A DNA stretch of 63,862 bases, the filler included, from Olpidium bornovanus S191 (taxonomy: Eukaryota > Fungi > Olpidiomycota): assembly GCA_017911155.1 (NCBI GenBank). It is 34 parts of 34 records of this genome, joined end to end, with 100 filler letters (N's around TTAATTAATTAA, not from the genome) between each part and the next. Parts side by side here need not be neighbours in the genome. Positions count along the whole stretch, not along the records: positions 9,180 to 10,660 come from JAEFCI010006884.1; positions 10,761 to 12,220 come from JAEFCI010003663.1; positions 12,321 to 14,395 come from JAEFCI010001716.1; 31 more parts are not named here. The stretch is one strand, 5' to 3'. How positions within the stretch are numbered: the first letter of the stretch is position 1; each line of letters begins with the position of its first letter. Positions 133 through 13,915 of this stretch are shown piece after piece. Position numbers and translations under genes: made by a program. The notes under the pieces were generated by a model. The model had not been told where the DNA came from, did not search any database, and was given only the letters and a program-made list of their open reading frames with translations.

Positions 133-1598
133 ATGAGGGCAAGCGCCGCCGCCGCCGCCGCTGCCGCGGCCTCGGCCTCGGCCTCGGCGAGAGCGCTGCG
201 CGCGCTGTCCGCGGCGCCGGCCCCGGCTCCGGCGCGGCTGCTCGCGGGAGCCGGCGCCCCTAAGTGGAACGTCGGGGAATCGGGCGCGCTCCGCGGGCCC
301 GCGCGCCGGCCGCAGGCGACCGCCCCGCGCGGCCGCACCGGCCGGCTGACTGCAACAGCGTCCCTGGCCGCGGTGAGGCTTGACTCCGCGTTAGGTAAGG
401 TGACTGTAAAAGAAAAAAAAAAAAAAAAAAAAAAAAGTATGGGCTGGGGGAGGGAGGCGGGTGCGGAGGCCTCCAGCGTTGCAAAATTTGCGGCTGCCGT
501 TCGTCCGGGGGAGGAAGGGGTGCTGATTCAGAGCTAACCGTTTATTCCAGTTCCGGCCCGGTTCTCGTCGACGCTGTCCTGGGAGCGCGAGCGGGACTTC
601 AACCCCACGTTCGTGAACGACGTGTTCTGCGGCGACTCGGCGGTGCAAACGGAGGAGGTCCCCTTGCCCGAGCACGTCCGGAAGAGCCTCTCCAACCCGG
701 TCGGCGCCGAGTTCCCCCGCGTGGACCAGTTCGACCGCTTCCTGGACTACACCCCCTACGACGACGAGGCGCAGGGCTACCCCGACCTGGGCGTGTCCTT
801 CCCGCGGGTGCGCGTCCCCGGCAAGTACAACATCCCGCCCAAGGCCGAGGTCCCCGTGGAAGTGCTCCTCGAGACCTCCGGCGTCAACCCCGGGTACTAC
901 CGCGGCCTTTACAAGCGGGTCATTGACGTGCGCTACCGGAGGCTCCACAAGAACGGCATGAAAACCAGACTGATGTGCGTCCACGTCATCGTCGGCGACT
1001 GCAAGGGCACGGCCGGGCTCGGAGTCGGCGTGGCGCCCGACGTCCGCACCGCCGTGCGGTTGGCCTACGTCAACGCCTACCGCCAGATGGAATCGTTTTA
1101 CATTTACGACAACCGGACCCTGCATTCCGGAGGGGAATTCATGTACCAGGGGTTCCGGATGAGCGCAAAAGCGAGAGGACCAGGTATTTTTTTTTTTTGG
1201 TTTTACGCTTTTTGTTTTGGTCTCGGCTTTCGGTGGTCTCGCTTCGCGCTGCGCACGGCGGCAACAACCCTCGGTTGAAAGTTCCGTGATCACACGTCGT
1301 TCCGTAACCCCCTTCTCGCCGTTAACGCCGCGCGCATGACGCATCGTTCTTTTTTTCGGCACAAATCACTTTAGGCTTCGGCAAGCGTGTGCACCATTCT
1401 TTCTACGACCTGTGCGAGGCCGTCGGCATCAGGGACGTGCAAGCCAGGGTCAAGGGCACCAGCAACCCCCAAACGGTCATCAACGCCTTCTTCGCTTTCC
1501 TTCGGACACAGCGACCACCGCGCGACGTGGCGCGCGCGAGAGGTCTCAAGATGACAGATCTGATGCACGCATACTACGGCCGCCCGCAGGAACTGTAA
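133..1598 (+). CDS. MRPS5: Mitochondrial small-subunit ribosomal protein uS5m (37S S5), 3 exons
   Basis: Exons 133-394, 551-1183, 1375-1598 join in frame via GT-AG introns (GCTAAC branch site at 532). Ala/Arg-rich presequence, then uS5 motifs VIVGDCKGTAGLGVG, YDNRTL, PGFGKR..LCEAVGIRD..KGTSNP and RGLKMTDLMHAYY. Confidence 0.9.
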
Positions 1599-1845: not shown

Positions 1846-1995
1846 CGCGGTGGCCGCGGCCGCTGCCGCGGGCGCGTGGCCCCCCCTGGCGCAGCCTATC
1901 CCAACTGTCTTAATGGAAGGGCGAGGTAGTAATAAACAGTCAACGATCATGGGGGGGGGGGGGGGGGGGGGAGGCGTTGGCGTGTACGGGCGGCC

Positions 1996-2026
<31 letters not shown>

Positions 2027-2999
2027 TTATATATATGCGTTTTTTTTTTCTCTGGGGGAACAGCGGTTGATTTTAGGCAGGGGGGGAGCGTGTCTTGCCT
2101 GCTGGCGGACTCGTGCGTCATTTTTTTTTTCGTGTCAAAACTGGAAGTTTCCAACTGCAAGTGTCTCCAGGCGAGAGTTACCGAAGCTGGGTTGCTGATG
2201 GTTTGCGCCAAGATTCTGCACGGTACCGGTGCATTGCTTTCAGCTGGTCCACTCCGCAAATCTTCGCCCTAACCCGCTGAATGTTTGCTTTCTCTGGACG
2301 GAAGGAAGGAGGGGAGGTCGCCCGGATACCCAGTTGAACCAAAATCCACAAATGCCCAAAAAAAAAAAAAAAAAAAAAAAACCGCCGGTTACGAAACACA
2401 TCCTGGAATGCGTCAAAAACCAGGGGAAAAAACGAGCAGACTGGAAGGTGATAATTTTGAGGGTTTTCTAATCCAGGCCGTTTTGGCCGTGCGGTCTGGA
2501 CCGGCGCGGACAAGATTCCGGTCTTTGTTTTTGAAGGAACGCGTGAGGTTGAAAAAAAAAAAAAAAAAAATCGGAGACGGCGTTTCCTGCTGTCACGGCG
2601 ATTGAAAGAGAGAAACAGGCGTGTGCAGCGCCCGAAATATCGCGCGTGCGGACCGGATATATCCACTCGGCGACTTCCTCGTCCCTCCGGCAGCCGGGGA
2701 ATTTTTTTTTTTTTTTGCGCTTCGTCATTTTTTTCTTTTCTTCCACAACGGCAGCAGGGCGAAAAATCCTGTCCCGGGCTGCGTTAGCGCCGGCGGCGCC
2801 GCCGGCAGACGGTCCCGCCTCGTAGACGTTCATTTTGGGTGTCGGGAAGCCCCAGGAGGTCCGGAAAGGTACCCCCGAGCCGTCCAGGCGTCACCGCCGG
2901 GGTGTTAATCATTGTAAAGCCGTCCCCAGCGCCAGGGGGGAGCCCCCGAATGGACGCGGGAGAGGGAGGCGGGCGGCGGCGCGCGTTTCGCGGTTCGCG

Positions 3000-3241
3000 T
3001 CAGGCGGGCGACGAGAACTCGCGCGGGCGCGCGTGCGCGGACGAAGGCGCAGTTGGCGGCGGCGGCCGTTCGCGGCCGGACGCAGGACCGGCGGCGGCGG
3101 CGGCGGCGGACTCTCTCCGGAGCTCTTTGACCACCATGGCGAGGGCTTCCGGGTTCACGCCGGTCTCGCACAGGCCGACGCACAGCGACAGGCACTCGCG
3201 GTCGAGGCCGGTGTTGAGCAGCGAGGAGATCTCGTAGAGCA
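3000..3241 (-). CDS. MZT1: Mitotic-spindle organizing protein 1 (MOZART1), last exon; first exon lost at contig break
   Basis: [43 protein letters not shown] matches the MOZART1 family; CAG acceptor at 3244-3242. Confidence 0.9.
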
Positions 3242-3479
3242 CTGGGCGGGGGAAAAACGAAGGGGGAAGAACGGGCCGGAGGAGGGAAGAAAGACGGGGA
3301 TGGGTTGGGTGTCAGGTGGATTGCCGACGGTCGGCGGGAGGGCGGGGGGGGGGGGGGGGGGGAAAGGGCCCCCCCCCCCNNNNNNNNNNNNNNNNNNNNN
3401 NNNNNNNNNNNNNNNNNNNNNNNTTAATTAATTAANNNNNNNNNNNNNNNNNNNNNNNNNNNNNNNNNNNNNNNNNNNN

Positions 3480-4514
3480 CACTGTTCGTCGACGGCATGG
3501 CGTCCTTGTCATTTGATTTGGCTTGCTCGGCTGCCAGTTCCAATTTGGCGATGAAAGCAGCTAGCGCGGCAGCTCCCCCTGTTCTCGAGTATGTTGGGAT
3601 GGTGGAGAGGAGTGCACGCGCTAGTTGACTGCTTCCTGTCCCTCGTTGTCCTTCGTTGCTTGGGCTTCCATGCCCGAGGTCGTGTTGGCGATTGCTCTCT
3701 TGTTCAGAGCGCCGTTCTCTTGGGTCCTCCTGGGCGACAAGCTCCTCAATCGTAGTTTTGCACTTGTGCCGTCAGCATGTGGACTTGCTGACAAAGCGTT
3801 TGCACTTCTGCGTCGACGTCAGCTCTTCGTTGCGCCTCCTGGCGTGTCCTCTCTCGCTCCAAGAGAATGGAGTCAACGACTCTCTGAGATTGCGCCGACA
3901 GCTTGGTCAACCTCGATGAGGTGGAGTCCCTCAACTCGCTGCGAGCGGCCGTGGTGCCGTCACGCAATGCCCAAACTCCGGCGCGCCCTCTCTCGTTGTC
4001 CGCCGTTGCGTAGTACGCTCGGTCGTCGTCGTACGCCATCTCCGCCTCTCCGTGGGGCGTCTCAGGTGTCACCTGGAGTGCCCCGGGCATGCCTTGTGCA
4101 TGCCGTGGTCTCCCTTCGTCCAGGACAGCACTTGCGCTGAATTGCTGGCGAGGGTGGCGTTCTTCTTCCACGGTTCTGCCTCTGACCAGGAGAAGAAGGG
4201 GTTTTTCTTCTTCGTAGGCGGAGAGTCCGTTGGGGCTCATAACCTGTCGACTTCGGGTGGAAAAAGGAGCCACGGGGCTCTTCTATTCCTTGATTCTACC
4301 CGGTTTTTATAGAGAGGGATTCAGGGGAAAGTTCCGGGTCCAGGGGTTGGATGTGCGCGGTGCCATGCGTGCTTTGCCCCCCTTTTCTACAGGAAGGAGG
4401 TTTCGAATTGCAATCGTGTCTCGCCCAAGGCGCACAAGGTGCGGAGGAAGCCTTACTATGTGGGCAGAGCTGAATGGCCGCAATGTAGACGAGATTCATC
4501 CGTTCTGACGAACA
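3480..4514 (-). mobile_element. Degenerate LTR retrotransposon 5' part: putative LTR, half-tRNA PBS and frameshifted Ty3/gypsy-like gag
   Basis: LTR end ...TCGACA (4250-4245), with TATAAAAA about 60 nt upstream, is followed by GGTTATGAGCCC (4244-4233). ORF 4240-3746 and then, after frameshifts, RALLSTIPTYSRTGGAAALAAFIAKLE, homologous to the gag at 54538-55270. The LTR outer boundary near 4514 is tentative. Confidence 0.7.
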
Positions 4515-5366
4515 GTTGGAAGTTCTGGCATGAACTACGCTCCCGTAAGCACAGGACTCTGGGTCCACGACCGCACTTTAAGCACGTCATGCTGTGAAGG
4601 ATGCAAAATCACATGGGCGAGCTACATTTTTTCATCCTCAGAAATGCACCTCTCGGATCCCCATTGCAACCTCCAGCCCATATGCCAGGCGGAATCCCAA
4701 CCGCGTTTGCGTCCCTGGCTCATGCACAGCAGATTGGAGCTGCGGCACTGCACCGTTGCATAGACAGTCCAAGGATGTAGACGCTTGCGACGTTGAGAGC
4801 GAGGACAACAAAACGAAGGGCAAGACGGCCCAACGGACGCGGAACATGTCGATCTGGATTACAGCCTATTCACAGAATCGTTTGCTTTCCCTGCCCGACG
4901 ACGGTAGAGATAGATTCGTAACGGGTGCGCGCGATGTATGCACAGAGGTCGAGAATCAACAGCGGTCTCGCAAAAATGAAAAAAAAAAAAAAAAACAGAG
5001 AAAACCACGCCACCGAACCATAACATAGGCGGTTTCGCATCCCAAGATAACGCGCATACGCATATTTCACCCGGCAACATTTATTGAAGGAGACGACAAG
5101 TCTATCATATCAAGATACTACGGGTAAAAGAGCGTCGGATTCCCTTTTCTATTCGGGATTCTTTTCGTTCGTTGGTCTCCGCTTTCGCAAACGTGGATGT
5201 GGCATCGAGATAATGTTCGAGGTTCCTGGTGTCCCCCGCCAAACAAACTTCGTTTGGCAGACCATGNNNNNNNNNNNNNNNNNNNNNNNNNNNNNNNNNN
5301 NNNNNNNNNNTTAATTAATTAANNNNNNNNNNNNNNNNNNNNNNNNNNNNNNNNNNNNNNNNNNNN

Positions 5367-10560: not shown

Positions 10561-12031
10561 CACGGAGTGGGGGACCACAAAAAAAAAGTGACCGAATAAC
10601 AACAAAAAAAATTGGACCGAAATACCCCCACCAGGCCGCGCCAACACAGCATCTCCGGGGNNNNNNNNNNNNNNNNNNNNNNNNNNNNNNNNNNNNNNNN
10701 NNNNTTAATTAATTAANNNNNNNNNNNNNNNNNNNNNNNNNNNNNNNNNNNNNNNNNNNNCATGCATCGGTATATCAGGAAAACCCAGTTCCCCCCAGAG
10801 CAGGAGGTTCCGGCAAAACAAAATCACACACGGCCAACAACGGGCAGATCAAGCCGGAGAAAGATGCGAACCCCGGCACAGGCGACTCGCACCTACTTCC
10901 CTGTTTCGCCCCCTCACGGTAGACCTCTCTGGCCGACCGCCGTTCGCCTCGCCTTGTTTGTTTGTCCTCGGCGTCACTTTTCCAGACGGCGTCAGACCTG
11001 TCGTAAATCCGCCAGAAATCGGGCCGCCGCCGTCGTTCCACGGTCCATCCAAGGGATCGAGGGATCGGCCAACCTCTCCTTGCCATTCACTTGGGTCGTC
11101 CTAAGCTGGCGGAAGTAATCCCAATTCGTGCAAGTCTCAGATTCACGGCAAAGGGTGGGGCCCGGGGCGCGGTTGATCTACTTGTGATCACGTGCCGGCT
11201 TTGAGCCGGCCGAGCTGCCTTAGACGGCTCACGGCTCGGCTCGACTCACGATGATAGACATATCGGCTGAGCCGGCTCAGCTGCTGGGTAGCCGGTGTAT
11301 ATTTATTGTTTCGATATTTTGCGAACGTGGGGATAGTTTGTAAACGTTTTCAGGTTTCTTTCCATTGACGCGTTCGTTATTTATGTGCAAAATGAGCTTG
11401 AAGTTTATAGAACTTCTCCACCTTAATGGACCATGATAGTCATATAGAGCGAACACCACAGCTGGCATAGGATCGGTTCATTCGCGGGGTTGTTTAGTTT
11501 CCGAGAACGATGTCGCGTGCCGCCCAGATTATCAGGCGCAGAGCTCGTCAAGGCTTCCTGATCTCCGCGATAATGAGCTGTGATTGTGGTATGCCAGTGG
11601 GCAATGCACTTCCAAAGGTGGCCTCCAATCCATGAGGTGCTGGGGACCCGAGACCGTGGTTATCATTGACATATCTACGGATTGGGGTTCTACGGAGCGA
11701 CTGCGCGAGCCGCGACCTGACGCAGACGGGCGTGTGAGGTGGCGGCGTCGGCGGAAACTCGTGCGCTGCGAACTCGTTGGCAAACGGAGGCGGGGAATCC
11801 GTGGGATTCTGTTTCTCGCCCGCAACCTGGAGGTCTCGGAACTGGGCGGCTGTGATTTAAATGTCACTCGGGAAACGCGGGGAGGAGGATGGGATATGGC
11901 GGCGTGGGGGCCCAGCGCCACGGATTGCGGGGCCGGACATGGCGGCTTTTCTTCTTGGAGCCGCCGGCGGCAGCGGGAGGCGATGGCATGTTGGAATGGC
12001 TTCGCAGGGCAAGCCAGACACCTGGTGAATA

Positions 12032-12104
12032 GGGCAGATAGCTCAGTTGGTAGAGCGTCCCTCCGGGATAGGGAAGGTCCCGAGTTCGACCCTCGGTTGG
12101 CCCA
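12032..12104 (+). tRNA. tRNA-like cloverleaf inside the LTR, anticodon position GGG (nominally Pro), non-canonical C33
   Basis: Acceptor GGGCAGA/TTGGCCC (one A-G mismatch), D stem GCTC/GAGC, anticodon stem TCCCT/AGGGA with loop CCGGGAT, variable loop AGGTC, T stem CCGAG/CTCGG with loop TTCGACC, A73; intact A and B boxes; TTTT at 12106-12109. Confidence 0.8.
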
Positions 12105-12120
12105 CTTTTGATGCGCAACA

Positions 12121-12134
12121 GGTTATGAGCCCAA
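12121..12134 (+). promoter_or_regulatory. Primer-binding site complementary to the initiator tRNA-Met anticodon stem-loop (half-tRNA type)
   Basis: GGTTATGAGCCCAA is the reverse complement of TTGGGCTCATAACC; GGGCUCAUAACC is the conserved anticodon arm of tRNAiMet. It directly follows the LTR-terminal CA. Confidence 0.85.
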
Positions 12135-13915
12135 TCGTGACTTTGTCCCTCCGATTGTGGTTGCGCGGGTGGCCGAGCCCCGTTGATAGCAGTGCCTGAG
12201 GTGCCTGGCTCGAGGGGGGGNNNNNNNNNNNNNNNNNNNNNNNNNNNNNNNNNNNNNNNNNNNNTTAATTAATTAANNNNNNNNNNNNNNNNNNNNNNNN
12301 NNNNNNNNNNNNNNNNNNNNCATGAGCATTGCCAAGTAAAGGTGCGGACTGAGAGTGACAGCATATTTGGAGCGCAAAATCAGGTCTCTCAATGCCCAAA
12401 GGGAGGCCCGAGTTCCGGAGCAAGACCAAATCTGTTAATGAGAAATGCCAAGTAGGGGTGCAGACTGAGCGTGACAGCATTTCCTGTCCAGGATCCACAG
12501 GTTGCAAGATGTGCATTGGAGGAGCAGCAAGAGCGCCTGGATGCAAGGTCCACGAACGTTTTGCCAGGCGTGACTGGCATCTAAATTTAATTTCGCTTGG
12601 AGCTTTTGGACAGGAGGGGGGGAAATACCGTAATGCTTACTTACATGATGTGCTTTTTTTACAAAGTCGGCTTGCCGTATCCTTTCTTCTCACGAATAGT
12701 ATCATCACAAGTGCTTATCATGACTCGGGCGGAATAATCGCCAATGTGAGTGTGTTCAAACTCCCTTGGTGAATGCCACTTTTGGGCTTTTTAACGTATG
12801 GATGCTATTTGAACGGGTGCCAAGCGGCGTTCCTCTTGGGGGGGGGGGAGATTTCTGAGCGGGAAATCGACGACGGTTGAAGTTCGCCGTTTGCTGTTCG
12901 TTAACTTAGTCTCTCTGATCGAGATTCTCATAAGTTGTTTACGGCAATCCCCGTCCCGCCTCTTTCCCTCCCCCTCTCACCCACACGGTCGCGTTGCCGC
13001 ACTTTTCTGCGAGGGGGGGGGGAGCGGAAAGGCGGGCCGAGATTCAATCACGCGACCGTCGTGCGCTGCCATACTGCTTTGCGCGGCGTTCGGCCAAAAC
13101 CTGCCGTACGGAGCGGCGGGTGCGTTCGATGGGGCGCGAACCCGCGGATACCGGCTACCAACGAGGGGGACGCCTGGCCGGCCTCTTTTTGCTGCCGAGT
13201 ACGTCTGCCCTGCCGGGACGTTTCACACCGAAGCTCGACCCGCCATACGCAGCAACACCAGGACGCGCGCGCGCACTCCGACAGCGTCGGCGCACGTGCG
13301 TGGTTTCGGACTGCGCAGCGTTCTGTTTATTTCCCCCCCCCCAATTCCAAAAGACACATGCAAGGATTACGCCGGGCATTTTCCAAACCGTTTTGATGCC
13401 AGCAGAATTCACCCGAAAAGGAAACTTTACGAGGGGGGAGAGAGGGGAATTGTGGCAGCGGCACGCAAAAGTGCGCAATATGCATCAATGTATGAGCCGG
13501 CTGCCGCGGTGTGCTGTACGAACGCGACTTCTTTTTACTTCGGTCACCTGGATCTCAAGCAAGGCGTTGGTTGAATTGACCCGAGTGGCTTTTGAGTCGT
13601 TTTGTAGCTCTTCAGCGGCCTTTTAAATGAGCTTTGAACATTCGTCTGGTGTTCCTACGGCCCCCATCCCTTCCCCCCACCAGCCCGACACAAGCTTGGG
13701 ATACACCGAGCGTTTTGCAGGAGAGGAAAACGGGCCTGAAGTGTCCTCCGCCGTGTTGGGAGCTGGCATTTTCCCTTTGAGTACAGCAGGTGGCTGTGAA
13801 ACGCCGGGAGAATTTCCAGGGATCCGCACGGGGGACAGCTTGGCAGGGAGGGCACGCGGCGTTCCTGCAAAAGCGGGGGTTGGGGCGGGCGGGCGGGCGG
13901 GCGGGGGGGGGGGGT

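Follow-up and report, generated by a model that had tools for sequence, protein, structure and literature searches.

A Helenus-type miniature LTR retrotransposon with a tRNA-like sequence in its LTR from contigs labelled Olpidium bornovanus

Positions 11989-12220 of the window (the whole stretch of DNA analysed here, 63,862 nucleotides) very probably comprise the 5' LTR and the entire internal region of a 364-bp non-autonomous retrotransposon of the Helenus type ("TRIMp3"), a reading that includes the Pol III and Copia mechanism proposed below. The layout is that of a non-coding LTR-PBS-PPT-LTR element (TRIM) with tRNA-like sequence within its LTR. The contig ends where it does because of the repeat, the assembly having broken exactly at the start of a second, identical LTR. 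This arrangement is more than chance, because four sequencing runs and two other O. bornovanus contigs (L072 and L073) contain the unit again, its edges at precisely 11989 and 12120, and because the reverse complement of the first 17 nucleotides of its primer-binding site lies within predicted tRNA-Met(CAT) genes. What is new is a distinct Helenus family in contigs labelled Olpidiomycota, outside the published host range of these elements, and the novelty is modest.

Element layout, tRNA-like sequence and primer-binding site

The 5' LTR occupies 132 bp (11989-12120; this and all parts of the element named below are on the plus strand) and is bounded by TGTTG at 11989-11993 and CAACA at 12116-12120 as read from the sequence, with contigs diverging exactly at both edges. 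The initial annotation had described such a unit enclosing a 73-nt cloverleaf with A and B boxes, and these features lie at the coordinates it gave. The LTR start is abutted by TGGCA (11984-11988), a candidate 5-bp target-site copy whose 3' counterpart would fall in flank beyond the contig end; the target-site duplication of fungal Helenus elements is likewise 5 bp (PMC10886601). The part of the LTR that lies 5' of the tRNA-like start (11989-12031) is the putative U3, judging by where the type-2 Pol III promoter lies. It is followed by the cloverleaf (12032-12104), which would form the R region, and, two bases past the end of the cloverleaf, by a run of four T residues (T4; 12106-12109), a weak Pol III terminator that would mark the R end. 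The remaining 11 nucleotides, GATGCGCAACA (12110-12120), are the putative U5 and carry the CA terminus at their end, according to the sequence and the LTR alignment. The T4 run is invariant in all four aligned LTRs.

ARAGORN called the tRNA-like sequence as tRNA-Pro(GGG) at 12032-12104/5, and Rfam RF00005 matched the 73-nt cloverleaf over the full model (1-71; 55.8 bits, E 6e-11). The A box TAGCTCAGTTGG (12039-12050) corresponds to tRNA positions 8-19 and the B box AGTTCGACCCT (12083-12093) to positions 52-62, with G53, T54, T55, C56, A58 and C61 retained, both from the sequence and the Rfam alignment. The earlier description as a full tRNA cloverleaf stands as regards the complete tRNA call, but the structure is not canonical, with C33 in place of U33 in the anticodon loop CCGGGAT (GGG) and an A5:G68 mismatch, both evident in the sequence and the Rfam alignment. 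These two features make tRNA function doubtful, and a working tRNA is probably not what this part of the LTR encodes. The canonical U33, fully paired acceptor stem and unique locus of a functional tRNA-Pro are all lacking here, and the sequence lies within a high-copy repeat. An E-value scan of the piece with Rfam returned tRNA only, plus a sub-threshold snoR12 match outside the element, and no 5S rRNA; a 5S-bearing TRIM of the Cassandra/Ajax kind was rejected on this result.

The internal region (12121-12220) measures 100 bp including PBS and polypurine tract, is too short for gag or pol, and is overlapped only by short, low-complexity ORFs. It opens at 12121, with zero gap after the LTR, on the 18-nt PBS GGTTATGAGCCCAATCGT (12121-12138), which is complementary to tRNA-Met(CAT) across its D-stem/anticodon stem-loop. 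The gapless initiator-tRNA site proposed at first is borne out. The 82-nt remainder past the PBS holds no gene-sized ORF; the 88-bp stretch without gag or pol that had been reported is indeed non-coding, but its length corresponds only roughly to the part that follows the PBS core. The polypurine tract GAGGGGGGG (12212-12220) closes the piece, just as the G run had been placed at the contig break, and in other copies it is followed directly by the 3' LTR, beginning TGTTGGAAT. Two LTRs and one internal region give 132+100+132 = 364 bp, inside the published Helenus range of 311-1263 bp.

A metagenome scan with the PBS 17-mer (12121-12137) yielded 71 loci. Ten of these carry the pattern within predicted tRNA-Met(CAT) genes, where the reverse complement is exact over the anticodon stem-loop, and none of the 71 is a member of the family. 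One locus is an autonomous Copia element (L028) in which CAACA is joined to the identical 18-nt PBS, and a second (L020) likewise has CAACA and then the same PBS; both were rejected as family members, being other elements that have only CAACA and the PBS in common with it. The genome that holds the element yielded no autonomous partner, which counts against the preferred reading. Scans with a 22-mer from the anticodon arm gave 0 matches in GTDB genomes and 0 in IMG/VR, as expected for a eukaryotic repeat.

Proposed transcription and mobilisation

The proposed Pol III transcription, U3/R partition and Copia-dependent mobilisation are deduced from sequence features. Pol III would start at or near tRNA +1 (12032), driven by the internal A and B boxes, read past the T4 run in the 5' LTR, a weak stop, and then through the PBS, internal region, polypurine tract and 3' U3, and halt at the corresponding T4 run in the 3' LTR. 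The resulting RNA would be ~310 nt long, with the tRNA-like sequence as its terminal repeat (R). Minus-strand synthesis would be primed at 12121-12138 by a 5' fragment of initiator tRNA-Met whose end lies within the anticodon stem, on its 3' strand, and plus-strand synthesis by the G run. Reverse transcriptase and integrase may be supplied in trans by a Ty1/Copia-type element that has TGTTG/CAACA ends as well and shares the primer. Two points count against the mechanism: a transcript has to cross the T4 run on its way from the promoter to the PBS, so that read-through must be assumed, and RNase P or RNase Z could cleave an intact cloverleaf, separating R from the PBS.

In an alternative, the element is a genuine TRIM and the tRNA-like sequence is not its promoter. 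Transcription would then come from Pol II or from read-through of a neighbour, and the cloverleaf would either be carried along as a passenger, left by a SINE or tRNA that inserted into the LTR long ago, or serve, for example, as a 3'-end processing signal. The position of the T4 run 5' of the PBS is in keeping with this alternative, as are the absence of the element stretch from all runs recorded as RNA and the statement of Kojima that Helenus Pol III activity is without experimental validation (PMC10886601). Older copies also lose box and stem positions with no compensation: the A box is mutated in the older unit 1 of the L072 array, and the B box shows single transitions in the older L072 units. 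Against it, the window and L072 units 2 and 3 all have an unmutated A box, and both boxes are intact in the youngest copies (the window and unit 3). The only sense-strand T4 run of the 232-bp unit (LTR plus internal region) lies right behind the tRNA-like end, T4 is a weak and leaky Pol III terminator in yeast (PMC9278858), the element length is within Pol III limits (PMC10886601), and Cassandra, the 5S analogue, does make Pol III transcripts (as cited in PMC10886601). On balance, we consider a TRIM with a non-promoter cloverleaf unlikely, and the Pol III-driven reading is preferred.

A further proposal, which we regard as quite improbable, is that the cloverleaf has been kept for more than its promoter: as the R region it would also be an RNase Z/RNase P substrate, and cleavage at the 3' LTR would determine where the genomic RNA ends. 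On the same proposal, the family has ancestry in common with the Helenus elements of rusts and mushrooms. If such shared ancestry were true, either the Helenus-Copia partnership would be older than the split between Olpidium and terrestrial fungi, or horizontal transfer among plant-associated fungi would have occurred.

Copies, junctions and flanking sequence

Copies were assessed from contigs of four public sequencing runs, X1-X4, in addition to the O. bornovanus contigs. The joint from 12220 to 11989 is present in contigs of all four runs; record 9 of X2, for instance, reads 12004-12220 and then 11989-12033 with nothing in between. The TRIM reading of the initial annotation predicted a second LTR, and TGTTGG does stand directly after the G run in the copies from the four runs and in L072. 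Further genomic copies were also recovered: many contigs carry the unit with different flanks, in X1, X3 and X4 and in L072 and L073. Differing flanks at 11989 or 12120 in these three runs and, with the window's relatives counted, in three O. bornovanus contigs describe a dispersed multi-copy family. Among the low-agreement loose ends in X4, 9 contigs lie before 11989 and 20+5+5 contigs behind 12120-12122, and X1 and X3 provide three additional distinct left flanks. One X4 contig matches 11346-11988 and then runs on for 118 nt of sequence foreign to the element, and may represent an empty site. The summed depth in X4 is ~1900-4800 over the LTR, 1000-1600 over the internal part and 7-13 in the flank; an excess of LTR over internal sequence fits solo LTRs.

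Contig L072 of O. bornovanus has the structure flank|LTR-int-LTR-int-LTR-int, the first unit beginning exactly at TGTTGG, with junctions ...GGGGGGGG|TTTGGAATGG and ...GAGGAGGGG|TGTTGGAATGG. It carries three LTR copies at 88-97% identity, and its internal regions are 88-95% identical to window 12121-12220. The units of the array are 85-91% identical to each other, so that the array is old or recombinant and not a fresh insertion. The neighbouring gene in L072 encodes a CRIB/PBD protein, low-complexity and broken by an intron. Contig L073 holds a partial, rearranged LTR copy with flanks GCAAG and CGCAC, in which the U5 11-mer is found again.

The three head-to-tail units of L072, together with a cyclic 232-bp contig from X2, could also be taken for a satellite-like tandem repeat of a tRNA-like unit that spread by unequal crossing-over and was never a retrotransposon. 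A target-site duplication was likewise not seen, the window copy and the L072 array both running off contig ends and no copy with both flanks having been recovered. Nevertheless, both flanked loci are in the same phase and start exactly at TGTTGG, dozens of contigs exit exactly past CAACA into unrelated sequence, and the LTR depth is 3-4x that of the internal part. A precise tRNA-Met PBS stands beside the CA terminus and a purine run beside TG, and tandem arrays that share LTRs are known in the Helenus family LTR-11_DR (PMC10886601). On the same-phase starts, the divergent flanks and the depth ratio, a pure satellite was rejected and a satellite origin is very improbable.

Although ARAGORN and Rfam both call a complete tRNA, an ordinary single-copy tRNA-Pro gene beside an LTR element is contradicted by the repeat boundaries in the run contigs, which take in not just the tRNA-like sequence but also 43 bp on its upstream side and 16 bp on its downstream side, by C33 and the A5:G68 mismatch, and by the same tRNA call being made three times in L072; a tRNA-derived SINE was likewise rejected, the unit having terminal repeats, ending in CAACA and lacking an A-rich or LINE-like tail, and we give these two readings together almost no credence.

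Relation to Helenus, host label and annotation

The Helenus type was described in 2024 (Kojima 2024, Biology 13:119; PMC10886601). [quoted passage not shown] The initial annotation knew of no such element from a zoosporic fungus or in combination with half-tRNA priming; the second part of this claim was wrong, because tRNA-iMet anticodon-loop priming is reported by Kojima, and the first part stands. With fungal Helenus the present element has in common the short non-coding LTR-PBS-PPT-LTR layout and the G-run polypurine tract. In excerpts of the Data S1 consensus file, the fungal elements further resemble it in the LTR start TGTTGGAAT, an LTR end of CAACA or CAATA, the placing of the tRNA-like sequence close to the LTR 3' end with a short T run behind it, and a PBS GGTTATGAGCCCA complementary to the tRNA-iMet anticodon loop. 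The PBS core GGTTATGAGCC (12121-12131) has 50 matches in that file and is placed at internal-region starts in the same excerpts.

We consider this a separate family because nine motifs of 9-11 nt, which sample the U3, the tRNA-like arm, the LTR tail and the internal region, all gave no match in the published consensus set, in which line wrapping may hide matches, and because a D-arm 16-mer occurred only in bivalve families among the matches shown. The 132-bp LTR is shorter than the LTR consensus sequences of Pucciniales in the Data S1 excerpts. The hosts also differ: published fungal Helenus hosts belong to the Basidiomycota only (Pucciniales and Agaricales; PMC10886601), whereas the label here is Olpidium bornovanus (Olpidiomycota), a label that depends on the binning of a metagenome assembly made from zoospores that were non-axenic. 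If this label holds, Helenus-type elements extend to zoosporic fungi and are not confined to Basidiomycota within the Fungi. In that case the element would inform the question of whether TRIMs with tRNA sequence had several origins or have long accompanied Copia elements with half-tRNA priming.

Other known systems share parts of this design. Like the Cassandra TRIMs of plants, the element has a Pol III small-RNA gene within both LTRs, but that gene is tRNA-like and not 5S rRNA, and the host kingdom differs. Ty5/copia-type elements of the Ty1/Copia superfamily have the same TGTTG...CAACA termini and a PBS against the anticodon stem-loop of initiator tRNA-Met; unlike the present element, which codes for nothing and carries a tRNA-like sequence in its LTR, they encode gag and pol and use Pol II LTR promoters. 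The tRNA-derived SINEs (SINE2) are also short, abundant, non-coding repeats with a tRNA-derived head that contains A and B boxes. SINEs have no LTRs, PBS or PPT, and their tail is LINE-derived or A-rich, whereas the present unit forms LTRs and terminates in CAACA, with either the PBS or flank next to it.

As with fungal Helenus, the family inflates tRNA gene predictions. Among the matches to protein searches with antisense ORFs were three O. bornovanus products. They derive from two gene models that lie antisense to the element and that we judge to be spurious; one or more of the O. bornovanus annotations as "hypothetical protein" appears to have been built on the antisense strand of an LTR array. 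Because its LTRs are called as tRNA-Pro(GGG) and an antisense gene model has been placed on them, the family should be masked when tRNAs are counted or genes modelled in this fragmented assembly. The other protein matches were unrelated, being bacterial Ig-like repeat proteins or antisense-tRNA ORFs.

Anatomy of the element and comparison with Helenus TRIMs

The tRNA-carrying element at 11989-12220 occupies the 3' end of the window piece 10761-12220 (58% G+C). Read from the sequence, its LTR extends on the plus strand from TGTTGGAATGG at 11989 to GATGCGCAACA at 12120 and includes a tRNA-Pro call with anticodon GGG (ARAGORN, 12032-12105, plus strand) as well as a full-length match to the Rfam tRNA model (12032-12104, plus strand; 55.8 bits, E 6e-11). 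In canonical tRNA position numbering, the A box TAGCTCAGTTGG lies at 12039-12050 and the B box AGTTCGACCCT, with G53, T54, T55, C56, A58 and C61 retained, at 12083-12093, both on the plus strand. The predicted cloverleaf is not that of a normal tRNA, as the anticodon loop CCGGGAT has C in place of the expected U33 and acceptor pair 5:68 is A:G. Further features on the same strand are a TTTT run (12106-12109) two bases past the tRNA-like end, a primer-binding site (PBS) GGTTATGAGCCCAATCGT at 12121-12138 that directly adjoins CAACA, and a polypurine tract (PPT) GAGGGGGGG at 12212-12220, the last bases of the piece. At 100 bp, the internal region is too short for gag or pol, and the block is overlapped by short, low-complexity ORFs only. 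Upstream, clustered inverted and direct repeats of TGAGCCGGC(C/T)(G/C)AGCTGC occur at 11180-11300 beside an AT-rich stretch (11300-11440), and the 14-mer ATGATAGACATATC is found three times, at 11251, 11433 and 11662.

Helenus elements are miniature non-coding LTR retrotransposons (TRIMs) with tRNA-derived sequence in their LTRs, joined with Cassandra and Ajax as TRIMp3; in fungi they have 5-bp target-site duplications, with Copia elements as their likely helpers (Kojima 2024, PMC10886601). The window element has the same anatomy, and its 364 bp fall within the published 311-1263 bp (PMC10886601). In the excerpted Helenus consensus sequences, LTRs begin TGTTGA or TGTTGG, the tRNA-like part lies near the LTR 3' end and precedes a short T run, GGTTATGAGCC opens the internal regions, and G runs close the elements. 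The consensus file (PMC10886601) holds 50 matches to GGTTATGAGCC and eight to TGTTGGAAT. None of nine motifs of 9-11 nt from the U3, tRNA-like arm, LTR tail and internal region was present in the published consensus set, and the D-arm 16-mer, in the part of that set displayed, is shown only for bivalve families; the element is therefore a separate family. On sequence comparison, it is a new family of the already known Helenus kind.

Published fungal hosts of Helenus are Pucciniales and Agaricales only (Kojima 2024, PMC10886601), and no later extension beyond these groups was found in the literature searched. Within that literature, the statement of the initial annotation that no such element had been reported from a zoosporic fungus stands; its statement that half-tRNA priming had not yet been combined with such elements was wrong, as shown by Helenus itself (Kojima 2024, PMC10886601). 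Some doubt attaches to the host label, since the DNA behind the binned O. bornovanus S191 assembly came from non-axenic zoospores. With the host taken from that label, this is probably the first Helenus-type TRIM from a zoosporic fungus.

Priming and the proposed life cycle

A metagenome scan with the PBS sequence GGTTATGAGCCCAATCG returned 71 loci, none of them a member of the element family. Ten of the 71 have the reverse complement, CGATTGGGCTCATAACC, within a predicted tRNA-Met(CAT) gene, where it runs from the end of the D stem through the anticodon-stem GGG and the CAT-containing loop to the first CC of the 3' strand. The partner of 12121-12137 is, by this position, the 5' portion of an initiator-type tRNA-Met and not the 3' end of a tRNA. 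Ty5 and copia use such half-tRNA priming, which is confined to Copia lineages (Kojima 2024, PMC10886601). One locus (JGI metagenome Ga0160429_1024378, 60-2565) is an autonomous Copia with gag zinc knuckle, protease and integrase, whose LTR (TGTTGAAAT...CTCAACA) is followed by the identical 18-nt PBS GGTTATGAGCCCAATCGT; this contig is AT-rich and hence from another organism than the window element. The same 18 nt follow CAACA in a GC-rich metagenome contig, L020, as well. Its minus strand carries CTCTCTCGCA joined to GGTTATGAGCCCAAT three times at 780-1000, spaced 50 to 170 bp, which may represent another miniature element family with the same primer.

By analogy, the type-2 internal promoter would start transcription at or just before 12032, giving U3 at 11989-12031, R as the tRNA-like sequence and U5 at 12110-12120. 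The T4 run upstream of the PBS, invariant in all four aligned LTRs (window and contig L072), is an obvious difficulty for a Pol III reading. The serious alternative, which concerns mechanism only, is that the cloverleaf is not the promoter; we regard it as improbable. In budding yeast there is very little pausing at T4, five Ts being the minimal functional terminator and six needed for efficient termination, and a T4 adjoining the acceptor stem is a weak terminator only (PMC9278858). With the cloverleaf as promoter and a leaky T4, the polymerase would pass through the 5' LTR and sometimes stop in the 3' LTR, producing a transcript of ~310 nt that begins and ends with R. A tRNA-Met fragment would prime the minus strand, with strand transfer through R, the G run would prime the plus strand, and a Copia integrase would insert the element via its TG/CA ends, as in a standard LTR cycle. 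No RNA run was among the public runs matched by the piece, and a Copia helper of the window element was not found.

LTR junctions in public sequencing runs

The window alone cannot prove that the 132-bp unit is an LTR because its contig ends at 12220, short as a result of the fragmented assembly (13,695 contigs in 29 Mb). The whole piece 10761-12220 was searched against public runs, and Logan contigs from four of these (X1-X4) were aligned to it. A direct joint from 12220 to 11989 occurs in contigs of all four: X2 record 9 runs from 12004 to 12220 and continues at 11989-12033 with zero bases between, X1 has one additional G, and more X4 variants pass from the G run into TGTTGGAATT. In other copies, therefore, a second 132-bp unit adjoins the PPT, as the initial annotation had predicted.

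Contigs exit the unit at exactly two sites, before 11989 (nine X4 contigs, agreement 0.44, plus three different flanks across X1 and X3) and after 12120-12122 (20, 5 and 5 X4 contigs, agreement 0.39-0.54). Summed X4 depths, which are not copy numbers, are ~1900-4800 for the LTR, 1000-1600 for the internal part and 7-13 for the flank. These show a high-copy family in which LTR depth exceeds double that of the internal part, a pattern that solo LTRs would produce.

Positions 10761-11009 are present in X1 with zero differences, which makes its organism A either the source organism itself or one very closely related to it. The left flank is present in X4 at ~90% identity; contig 14 of this soil-metagenome relative matches 11346-11988 at ~90%, ends its match exactly at 11988 and continues with 118 nt unlike the element, and may be an orthologous empty site. 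In organism A (X1 record 3 and X3 record 12, compared with 12118-12220), one internal-region copy is preceded by CACCAAAATTG joined to ACAGGTTATGAG instead of the element LTR, with a normal LTR downstream in X1 record 3. Possible explanations are a hybrid element, a nested insertion, or a second family of LTRs that has this internal region in common.

Copies in Olpidium bornovanus contigs

A protein search with an antisense ORF of the element (12046-12219, minus strand) matched two products of 'hypothetical protein BJ554DRAFT_1885 [Olpidium bornovanus]' (P0001 and P0002). Their contig, L072 (JAEFCI010009164.1), reads on the element strand from the flank GTGTATAT directly into TGTTGGAATGG, begins its array at exactly TGTTGG, and continues as three successive LTR-internal units up to the contig end. 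Because BJ554DRAFT_1885 lies antisense to this three-unit array (L072:1-626, minus strand), its gene model is almost certainly spurious. Identity to the window LTR is 88, 91 and 97% for the three LTRs, each of which ARAGORN called as tRNA-Pro(GGG). Among copies (11989-12220 aligned with the L072 units), transitions exceed transversions ~3:1, many at CpG, a bias compatible with methylated repeats being deaminated, or with RIP-like mutation, in this fungus. The units are 85-91% identical to each other, mostly through transitions, and the array is therefore old or recombinant; the window copy is, by these alignments, close to the family consensus.

Tandem arrays with common LTRs are reported for the Helenus family LTR-11_DR (Kojima 2024, PMC10886601). 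Three observations make a pure satellite array unlikely here: the two flanked loci begin at one and the same phase, the end of CAACA is the exact point of exit for many contigs, and LTR sequence is in large excess over internal sequence. An ordinary tRNA gene and a SINE are excluded by the repeat boundaries together with the PBS, PPT and LTR junctions in the run contigs. The tRNA-like LTR unit, PBS and G-run end originally noticed at 11989-12220 are confirmed by ARAGORN, Rfam and the sequence, and their reading as an LTR-PBS-PPT-LTR TRIM is supported by the junctions and exits in X1-X4 and by the L072 array.

A full HMMER scan found one further contig, L073 (JAEFCI010001832.1). Its copy (165-655, minus strand) comprises the first 70 nt of the LTR, to the D arm, ~410 nt of unrelated sequence with a long G run, and TTTTCGATGCGCAACA, the final 16 nt of the LTR; its flanks, GCAAG and CGCAC, differ from each other. 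By this layout the copy is rearranged. The gene model P0008 overlaps it.
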